A model generated the notes under the pieces. That model saw only the letters and a list, made by a program, of their open reading frames with translations, did no database searches and was not told the DNA's origin. DNA of 64,000 nt from Macrostomum lignano. Taxonomy: Eukaryota. Both the position numbers and the translations under genes were made by a program. Shown here piece after piece: positions 45,701 through 56,294 of this stretch (position 1 is the first letter of the stretch; each line of letters opens with the position of its first letter). The stretch is from assembly GCA_002269645.1 (NCBI GenBank), contig NIVC01000396.1, positions 496,001-560,000 of the forward strand, given 5' to 3'.

Positions 45701-48700
45701 GGTAGCATCAGAGGCCAGCCAGTTCAAACGGAGAGAGGCAGTGCAGCGAGAGCGATCGGGCGGGTTTCCAGCCTGGAAGCCCCAGTGGAAAGCTCGGTAA
45801 AGTGATGAATTCCAGTTCCTCCCCCCTAGTGGCCGCGCAGTCCCCGAAGACGCGTGGCCGGGCAGAAAAGAGCCTTCAACTTGAAAGGGATTTTTAAGGG
45901 GAGTAAAAAAGAAAGAGGGAAAACTAAGAAAAGCCAGTTTGCTTTGGTTACTATCCAGATCGCCATCGCCAGCCCCACAAAAAAATTTAGTCACTTTCTT
46001 CCGCAGTTCGGACCCCGCTGCCAGCCTTGTTAAGCAGTCGCTCTCTCTCTCTCTCTCTCTCTCTCTCTCTCTCTCTCTCTCTCTCTCTCTCTCTCTCTCT
46101 CTCTCTCTCTCTCCTCTCTCTCTCTTCTCTCTCTCTCTCTCTCTCTCTCTCTCTCTCTCTCTCTCTCTCTGTCCGGCACTCCAGCAATATAATATGCTTT
46201 TTGACAACTTTTCTGAGCACAAAAGCTCTGCTTTTAAGAGATGAGAACACGTACGGTTTACTGGGGAACACTGAAGCAATGGAGAGGGTAAAATTAGAAG
46301 GCAATGGAGGGGTAGCGGAGGGTAAAGTAGGAAGCAATGGAGGGGGTAGCGGAGGGTAAAGTAGAAAGTAATGGAGGGGGTAGCGGAGGGTAAAGTAGAA
46401 AGCAATGGAGGGGGTAGCGGAGGGTAAAGTAGAAAGCAATGGAGGGGGTAGCGGAGGGTAAAGTAGAAAGCAATGGAGGGGGTAGCGGAGGGTAAAGTAG
46501 AAAGCAATGGAGGGGGTAGCGGAGGGTAAAGTAGAAAGCAATGGAGGGGGTAGCGGAGGGTAAAGTAGAAAGCAATGGAGGGGTAGCGGAGGGCAAAGTA
46601 AGAAGCAATGGAGGGGGTAGCGGAGGGCAAAGTAAGAAGCAATGGAGGGGGTAGCGGAGGGCAAAGTAAGAAGCAATGGAGGGGGTAGCGGAGGGTAAAG
46701 TAGAAAGTAGCGGAGGGGAACCAGGCAGTAATTTATAATTCCAGCATTGTATTAAAGCACAACTCCAGTGCAACACGAGCGTAATAACAGTGTTTCACCT
46801 GAGTCAATCTCGGAAAAAAGCGTATTTAAAATTGAAGAATTCAAAATCGCAATTGCCGCTGCGTGGCCTCGGCAATCAAGAAGGGCTGGGGTGGGGGGCT
46901 GACAGATGGGTAGGAGGCTGAAAAAACGAACCGTCTGCTCAGTGCTCAAACTGTGAGGAGGGAAGAATTTAATTTCAAAGCTTCAATCGAAGTTCCATCG
47001 CGGCCCGAATTCCCCAATTCCCAACAGCAGTTGCTAGGCGGGGCTGGCAGCAGCAGCTACGTGACAGACTGGCATCGGATTGCGTAACCAGAAGAGCGGC
47101 GCAGAAGCGAATAGAGAAGCCTCCTGGTTCCCCGAAAACGGGATCTATTTCCCATTTCTAAGAAAGTGGCCTCTGAAAGCAGGCCCAGGCTAGGCGCATT
47201 AATCCCGCAGCTTAGCGGAGAAAACGGCTGCGGGAGAAGCAGCGGCTCCTCAAGCTTCTTATTATATACATAAAGAGTTTGAGAAGCAATTCCACTGAGA
47301 CGGCCACCTCAGCCTCATCACAGCCTCAGGCGCTTATGGCGTCAGGAATTGGAAAATAGAAAATAGGAGGAAACTGAGAGGGCAGCGGCCCAGCTGAGAT
47401 GAAGCTGCTGAAAGTCTGCGAGGCCTTTCACGCTTGGAAAGAAGCTGGACAGTGAAAAAGAATGCTTACAGAATAACTGTTAAAAGTGCTTTGCTTACTT
47501 GAAATACTGAAAATTGCGGAAATTTATAAATACAGTTTTAAAGTAGATACGTCTGACTCACAAAGGCAATGAAGATGTTAATGTATCTGGCATCCTGATG
47601 GTAGCGCTTGTCCTGAGAAAACGCTTTAATGCACTTTTTGAGCAGGTCGTACAGTTGGCTATCCTTGCCTCCGCTGGGGTAGTTCTCCTCGGTCCAGGTG
47701 ACGTAGCTGGGTAAATGTAAGTTTGGTTGTTAGTTGAGTAAAAGCAACCCAAGCCGACAAACCAACCAGAGGTAGAGATACAACCCAACCCGACAACCGA
47801 ATCATAGAAAGACAACCCAATCCTACAGCTCAATTATAGAGAGGCAACCCAACCCGACAAATCAATCATAGCGGCAACCCAACCGGACAACTCAATCATA
47901 GAGGCAACCCAACCGGACAACTCAATCATAGATAGGCAACCCAACCGGAGAACTCAATCATAGAGAGGCAACCCAACCGGACAACTCAATCATAGAGAGG
48001 CAACCCAACCGGACAACTCAATCATAGAGAGGCAACCCAACCGGACAACTCAATCATTGAGTGGACGCGACCTGGAAACCCAACCTGACAAACCAAAAAG
48101 CAGAAAAAATAGCGGACTCACTCTATGTAAGGCAGAAGCGGATCGTCTCCCGAATAGGACCTGATTGCCAGCTCCAGCTCTCTGGAATCGGCAAAGTTGG
48201 CAGTAAAATAGTTTTTTAGAAGAGAAAAAATGGCGAGCAAGACAGCAATCGAAAATAAAAGTTATTTTAGCAGAGCGCAAGCATGGCCAGTGCGCAGACT
48301 TTGATGAACTGCTGCGCTTCAAACCAGATGGGGCCAAGTCGTCCAGCCTCCCCCCTCCTCCAACCAACTGCCCAGCATCCAAACTATCTCCATCTTACTC
48401 CTCCCAGCAGACATGAAAGATGCATGGCAGTCAGTCAGTCAGTCAGCTGGACTCGCTGCCATTATGTCCTATATCTATTACTTTGTTGGCGGCACCGCCC
48501 CAGCTCGCCCCACCTCTTTCCTTTCCCCATAGCGCGGTAGCACTGCTGGATAATTAATGAGCGGCCGGGTCATTTCTGATCCCAGTTATAAGATGCAAGT
48601 GTCGGTGGCGGCGCACCTTGATCGAAGTGGGCTTCACTTCGTAATAAAAATGTTGAAGACGGCTATTCAAAACCGGGGGGTTGCACGGACTCAGCAGTAA

Positions 48701-56294: not shown

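Follow-up and report, generated by a model that had tools for sequence, protein, structure and literature searches.

How does a gene coexist with a host gene that is read in the same direction straight through it? The question is raised by a stretch of the genome of the flatworm Macrostomum lignano (Platyhelminthes, Macrostomorpha), a segment of 64,000 nucleotides of contig NIVC01000396.1 (assembly GCA_002269645.1, positions 496,001 to 560,000 of the forward strand) that we refer to as the window and whose own numbering is used throughout. On its minus strand, an intronless open reading frame (ORF) for a stomatin lies inside the first intron of a MadBub-type gene. A preliminary description of this locus had proposed that the nested gene makes its host a switch between protein forms. 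We consider it probable that the locus is instead an ordinary same-strand host-nested gene pair, consisting of MadBub and an independent functional stomatin unit in intron 1. The preliminary description had also stressed that most nested genes are antisense to their hosts. This holds for human nested genes, about 63% of which lie on the strand opposite the host and roughly 41% of which are made up of a single exon, but the same-strand class makes up about 37%, a minority yet not a rare one (PMC3192792, citing earlier work). The arrangement itself is of a known and fairly common kind.

The host is a MadBub-type gene

The host gene extends over about 35 kb, from position 56294, where the part encoding the first KEN box (KEN1) and the TPR domain begins, to the last matching stretch at about 21.6 kb. 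Judged by its sequence features it is a MadBub-type gene, with KEN1, a TPR domain, a GLEBS-like motif, a second KEN and a kinase domain. MadBub is the unduplicated BUB1/BUBR1-type checkpoint kinase, reportedly described by Suijkerbuijk et al. 2012; Tromer et al. 2016 is a further paper associated with the family. The KEN box reads WELDKENVQ (residues 5-13) and is followed by the TPR domain some 30 residues further on. KEN tripeptides of MadBub occur on the minus strand at two positions only, 56270 (KEN1) and 32497. The latter, read as GFKENTMEP (32489-32497, minus strand), lies upstream of the GLEBS-like motif (about 32140-32230, minus strand) in one large exon. For this GLEBS or Bub3-binding region the Pfam match stays below its threshold (PF08171, Mad3_BUB1_II, E=0.0069, 17 bits, cut-off 21), and the motif is visible by eye. 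Likewise, the Pkinase match to one exon is weak (E=2.6e-5, below the cut-off), and the kinase motifs GxGxxG, the VLK lysine, HADIKPDN (HxD) and DFG can be read in the MadBub ORFs. The concatenated exons are 98% identical to the M. lignano protein BOX15_Mlig031023g1 (P0121), which carries PF00069. Among the M. lignano matches there were fragments of one MadBub gene only, in a word-based search that is not exhaustive. A literature search combining M. lignano and BUB1 found no paper.

The host shares with the MadBub family the N-terminal KEN, the Mad3_BUB1_I TPR domain, a candidate GLEBS-like motif, the second KEN and the C-terminal kinase. Unlike the family, it has a long coiled-coil and Q-rich insert, very large introns filled with minisatellites, and a first exon of aberrant, AT-rich codon composition. 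The coiled-coil exon (30932-31519, minus strand), which looks unusual for the family, has the GLEBS region on one side and the PTVNTKEAF region on the other; it gave weak Pfam matches of dynactin-p22/KxDL-like type, and its coding status is confirmed by P0121. A further exon at 27.0-27.9 kb contains two repeats of an 11-residue peptide that resemble ABBA-type Cdc20-binding motifs. Three UniProt entries from an older assembly (P0136, P0162 and P0163) look like frame-shifted readings of the MadBub locus.

The KEN1 exon and its join to exon 2

Coding exon 1 (56161-56294, minus strand, 134 nt), which was read in the sequence, starts with an ATG at 56294, ends in KNKR and leaves phase 2; its donor is ACA followed by GTAAGT (56160-56155). 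Intron 1 (48182-56160, minus strand) spans 7,979 nt from GT to AG at 40% GC and includes a block of 21-46% GC at about 52.5-56.5 kb. Exon 2 (48122-48181, minus strand, 60 nt) has the acceptor TTCCAG, with tgccgattCCAG directly preceding its start at 48181, and the donor GA followed by GTGAGT. Exon 3 (47562-47706, minus strand, 145 nt) ends in RYINIFIAF, and exon 4 (41684-41883, minus strand, 200 nt), which encodes the remainder of the TPR domain, ends in LVEKF and agrees at 94% identity with the beginning of P0126, a UniProt fragment from M. lignano. Exons 3 and 4 have CAG acceptors and GTGAG donors. These motifs agree with the cis-splice consensus of the species, which is GT[G/A]AG for donors and CAG for acceptors (PMC8629364).

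The join of the KEN1 exon to exon 2 across 7,979 nt, as given in the preliminary description, was confirmed in its coordinates, its GT...AG boundaries and its phase: the CA left by exon 1 and the first A of exon 2 form Gln45, and the frame continues into exon 2. The spliced N-terminus of 180 residues matches the Pfam family Mad3_BUB1_I (PF08311) with E=8.3e-37 and 126 bits (cut-off 31.4), covering positions 2-123 of the 123 in the profile. This match sets in at residue 43, within exon 1, and crosses the exon 1/2 junction. Residues 1-175 align with P0122, a MadBub-type protein of 1,339 residues (E=1e-46); the alignment has one gap, of one residue, immediately ahead of the junction, and the spacing from KEN to GDDPL differs by at most one residue. 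The spliced N-terminus can likewise be aligned with the BUB1B of a fish (P0129, E=2e-39). When the exon-1 peptide alone was compared with a set of 164 proteins, its matches were confined to the N-terminal KEN regions (residues 5-57) in eight MadBub or BUBR1 proteins, with E values from 9e-7 to 1e-3, and included no KEN-less BUB1. Since exon 2 starts in phase 2, an upstream coding exon is required, and no other KEN1-like candidate exon was found within the 64-kb window. The KEN exon is the only plausible first coding exon of MadBub in the window, and its join to exon 2 is strongly supported by homology, phase and splice-site logic.

The flank upstream of exon 1 has features of its own. A strong acceptor-like tract, tttctttcgcag followed by g, occurs at 56353-56364 on the minus strand, 59 nt upstream of the MadBub ATG, and may be the acceptor of an intron in the 5' untranslated region (UTR) of MadBub or a spliced-leader acceptor. 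Directly upstream of the KEN exon, at 56800-59700 and 59924-60430 on both strands, lie fragments resembling the remains of retrotransposons without long terminal repeats. Their sole domain match is a weak one to Exo_endo_phos (E=0.0067), five ORFs upstream of exon 1 gave no Pfam match, and the ORFs at 57.9-58.8 kb and 59.1-59.7 kb contain near-duplicate peptide stretches. Room for the MadBub promoter is left either in the roughly 500 nt upstream of the exon or beyond these fragments.

The nested stomatin gene

The stomatin ORF was present as the preliminary description had it, complete, uninterrupted and intronless at 49157-50443 on the MadBub strand inside intron 1. It encodes a MEC-2-like protein of 428 residues plus a stop codon, with a match to Band_7 (PF01145, E=1.2e-37) and, over residues 67-354, to the stomatin structure 9oh9 in PDB (E=3.4e-99). 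The coding sequence and its signals lie wholly inside one host intron, with host exons, identified by homology, on both sides and on the same strand. A hydrophobic hairpin can be read ahead of the Band 7/SPFH domain. The hairpin, the SPFH domain and the C-terminal helical region are shared with the MEC-2/stomatin (SPFH, Band 7) family and with human stomatin structures (PDB 9oh9), and the nested protein has in addition long, low-complexity N- and C-terminal tails.

Closest to the nested stomatin are the M. lignano proteins P0001 and P0004, which are 68% identical to it over the full length and are both encoded by single exons. Synonymous divergence (dS) from these paralogues exceeds 1, the ratio of nonsynonymous to synonymous divergence (dN/dS) is 0.13-0.19, and nucleotide homology ends at the boundaries of the coding sequence. 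Because dS is above 1, dN/dS is this low and homology is confined to the coding sequence, the nested copy can be taken as old and under purifying selection, and the gene looks functional. A relative in Schistosoma mekongi, P0016, is single-exon as well; another M. lignano stomatin, the short P0063, spans 12.5 kb. The intronless state of P0001, P0004 and P0016 indicates that intronlessness is an old trait of this subfamily in flatworms and not the mark of a recent retrocopy.

Together, the nested gene (49157-50443) and its two paralogues (L001, 10001-11299; L002, 10001-11236) form a Macrostomum-specific trio of intronless MEC-2-like stomatins. Unlike other stomatins, the three have common termini: they share a 13-residue N-terminus, a 14-residue motif and a C-terminal SFGSGC, the terminal cysteine of which hints at lipidation. 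Flatworm stomatins derived from Logan are without these Macrostomum-specific termini. No MadBub exons were found within 10 kb of the P0001 and P0004 genes. The notion that these two are orthologues from a sister species was rejected, as they are M. lignano paralogues, and hence they have no bearing on synteny.

Signals flanking the stomatin gene

Both the CCAAT cluster upstream of the ORF and the AATAAA before exon 2, on which the preliminary description had relied, were confirmed. The cluster consists of six CCAAT/ATTGG boxes at 50583-50791 (minus strand), 144-348 nt upstream of the stomatin ATG. The background at 47-64 kb would lead one to expect about 0.8 boxes in 350 nt instead of six (Poisson p about 2e-4), and the paralogue P0001 has five such boxes in the equivalent 320 nt. 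We infer a putative TATA-less promoter of NF-Y type. The stomatin ATG itself has A at -3 and G at +4.

On the other side, a putative poly(A) signal occupies 48735-48763 (minus strand), in which AATAAA (48763-48758) is followed by the GU-rich stretch TGTGGCTTGTGTTG. This hexamer is the single AATAAA/ATTAAA between the stomatin stop and exon 2; it lies 393 nt past the stop and about 560-580 nt (577 nt by our count) before exon 2, and no poly(A) tract follows it. As a separate observation, a second CCAAT/ATTGG cluster (at least six boxes per 350 nt) is found at 55696-56069, close downstream of the KEN exon in the AT-rich first part of intron 1.

A same-strand nested pair as the favoured explanation

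If the locus is an ordinary nested pair, stomatin would be an independent transcription unit with its own CCAAT-box promoter and its own AATAAA/GU-rich poly(A) signal. MadBub pre-mRNA would be transcribed through this unit, which would then be removed as a whole with intron 1. The preliminary description had made much of this readthrough of the nested poly(A) site. Readthrough would indeed be needed, but the site is nothing special, given that the intron contains 18 canonical hexamers on the sense strand (6 AATAAA and 12 ATTAAA); premature cleavage would be suppressed at the stomatin site as at the other 17. Stomatin would be transcribed from its own promoter, probably in differentiated cells distinct from those that express MadBub, and since the expressing cells would differ, the two genes would rarely interfere.

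This picture resembles that of other same-strand nested genes of animals, in which a complete single-exon gene lies in a long, transposon-rich host intron in the same direction and the host must read through the promoter and the poly(A) signal of the guest. We see no difference in kind. The locus is a new instance, in a flatworm with spliced-leader (SL) trans-splicing, which adds a possible route of expression.

Alternative explanations

Several observations weigh against the nested-pair explanation. The GC content at third codon positions (GC3) is 0.34 in exon 1 (15 of 44 codons), as compared with 0.60-0.77 in exons 2-4 and 0.66-0.86 in later exons (Fisher p about 1e-5), and exon 1 is located in the transposon-rich block of 21-46% GC. 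A homologue search with the spliced N-terminus of 113 residues returned no public protein, and no public M. lignano model, that includes MadBub exons 1-3. The annotated M. lignano MadBub models begin at exon 4 (P0126) or at a later, coiled-coil exon at about 31.1 kb (P0121). The second copy of the locus, at L003, ends at window position 39784 and so does not cover 48-57 kb. The nested stomatin, for its part, was absent from the protein collection, an exact look-up found no record of it, and the gene appears to be unannotated. The composition of exon 1 and the lack of a public model with exons 1-3 would suit a KEN exon that is a relic or was relocated and is not spliced to exon 2 in vivo, or a misassembly between 48 and 57 kb; the 5' end of MadBub would then lie elsewhere and the stomatin gene would simply be upstream of the remaining exons. 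We hold this to be quite unlikely. Exon 2 in phase 2 demands an upstream coding exon, and the KEN exon supplies the right phase, a perfect GTAAG donor and a KEN-TPR spacing within one residue of that in P0122. It also fills the opening positions of the Pfam TPR profile, its peptide shows conservation with the N-termini of distant MadBub and BUBR1 proteins, and there is no alternative KEN1 exon in the 64 kb. The low GC3 leaves some room for a different history, usage or local mutational regime of exon 1, which we still take to be the functional first coding exon, given its conserved peptide and perfect splice donor. The guest, too, could be questioned, as a dead retrocopy or pseudogene whose frame has stayed open by chance: it has no introns, itself sits in an intron and is missing from the public M. 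lignano protein sets. We regard this as extremely improbable, since 428 codons have remained open despite a dS above 1 to the nearest paralogues, with a dN/dS of 0.13-0.19 and conserved terminal motifs. Furthermore, no poly(A) tract follows the AATAAA, homology to the paralogues does not reach the UTRs, promoter-like and poly(A) signals are present, and the closest relatives, one of them in Schistosoma, are intronless too. A recent retrogene was rejected on the grounds of the intronless paralogues and the Schistosoma relative, the dS above 1, the missing poly(A) tract and the homology confined to the coding sequence.

Two further explanations concern the way in which the transcripts are made. 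In M. lignano, about 30% of genes are trans-spliced to a 35-nt leader that ends in ATG, about 15% lie in operons with gaps of at most 1 kb, and SL use is enriched among neoblast genes (PMC8629364). Coupling of this operon-like kind could mean that stomatin mRNA is carved from the MadBub pre-mRNA, or that stomatin and MadBub exons 2 onward form a two-gene operon, in which case SL addition at the exon-2 acceptor, the most evident way to a KEN-less form in this species, would yield a KEN1-less, BUB1-like transcript. The locus resembles the operons of the species in that two same-strand coding units lie less than 1 kb apart and the TTCCAG of exon 2 agrees with [T/C]TNCAG, the SL-acceptor motif, at a distance of about 560-580 nt from the stomatin poly(A) signal. 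TTCCAG is equally normal as a cis acceptor, however, and unlike in these operons the downstream "unit" is an internal phase-2 exon that needs exon 1 for translation. Although distance and acceptor motif agree, exon 2 does not offer a translatable start: the leader ATG joined to it is out of frame and runs into a stop after 36 further codons, and an in-frame Met follows only at M127, within the TPR domain, so that no intact BUB1-like protein would result. Moreover, the roughly 650 nt ahead of the stomatin ATG contain no [T/C]TNCAG acceptor, and the CCAAT cluster in that stretch points to a separate promoter. SL coupling is thus unlikely in our view. The switch put forward in the preliminary description would have a regulated nested poly(A) site, or an intronic promoter with a mini-exon, toggle the locus between full MadBub, a peptide with KEN1 alone and a BUB1-like isoform from which KEN1 is missing. 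Its ingredients can be found. The host strand has an AATAAA, a KEN1 peptide of 45 residues would be translated from an unspliced transcript, and the candidate mini-exon (ATGGGGAAAGGAAAGAG followed by gt, 48514-48530, minus strand) is in frame with exon 2. The KEN1-only product is, however, simply a 45-residue ORF closed by the in-frame TAA inside the GTAAGT donor, and the mini-exon is of a kind expected by chance, being one of 230 in-frame candidates with ATG and a GT donor in intron 1, nine of them in the roughly 580 nt that separate exon 2 from the stomatin poly(A) signal. The mini-exon's donor, GTGGGG, departs from the GT[G/A]AG consensus. Nor does one hexamer among 18 on the sense strand lend support to a choice between proliferating and differentiated cells, and the proposal that one locus gives both MadBub and BUB1-like forms finds none either; a KEN1-less form would retain the internal KEN at 32497 and so would not mimic a subfunctionalised BUB1. 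We consider such a toggle very unlikely. In its most developed form, which supposes that the flatworm has a single MadBub gene, the nested stomatin would be a regulated intronic terminator or re-initiation point, at which differentiated cells truncate MadBub while neoblasts read through or start within the intron to make the KEN1-less BUB1-like form. This version seems to us highly improbable; if true, RNA processing at one locus would do what other lineages obtained by gene duplication.

Other features of intron 1 and the window

Besides the stomatin gene, intron 1 contains two elements of transposon character. On the plus strand, antisense to MadBub, an ORF at 51420-51866 encodes helix-turn-helix domains of the IS630/Tc1-mariner transposase type (HTH_29, 1e-11; HTH_23, 2e-11; HTH_Tnp_IS630, 1e-5) and is a probable transposon remnant; no terminal inverted repeats were found around it, and the ORF fragments downstream of it gave no Pfam match. 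The second is an AT-rich element of 2.7 kb (53290-55951, no strand assigned) with long imperfect inverted repeats, the arms of which (about 53290-53758 and 55187-55951) form the inverted-repeat pairs I1-I5 with 78-93% complementarity, and we take it to be a foldback-like transposon. Five ORFs examined inside intron 1 had no Pfam match, and no Rfam families were found in 46-60 kb.

In the introns and flanks of MadBub, many stretches are filled by long arrays of minisatellites, for example at 34950-37880, 13000-14750 and 61400-63460. Among them are a repeat with a step of 32-33 nt, tracts of (CTGT)n-like type and, in intron 2 (47773-48083), a 32-nt repeat. Past the 3' end of MadBub, on the opposite strand, lies a large gene with Ig and FN3 domains (4000-13100, plus strand). 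The locus of P0121 (L003, contig NIVC01003049.1) is alike in this respect, with a convergent model of 2,230 residues. L003 is collinear with window positions 39784-10130, and in the longest unique stretches the two agree at about 98% of nucleotides; minisatellite copy number differs between them. The window probably represents a further copy, or a further assembly, of a locus duplicated in M. lignano.

Significance

The main value of these results lies in annotation. Public MadBub models of M. lignano are truncated at the N-terminus and are without the KEN1 exon and the TPR exons 2-3. Correcting both genes would provide a complete MadBub model for a flatworm that serves as a model of regeneration and stem cells. 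The locus would also offer a clean test case of how a same-strand nested gene and its host coexist in a genome with SL trans-splicing.

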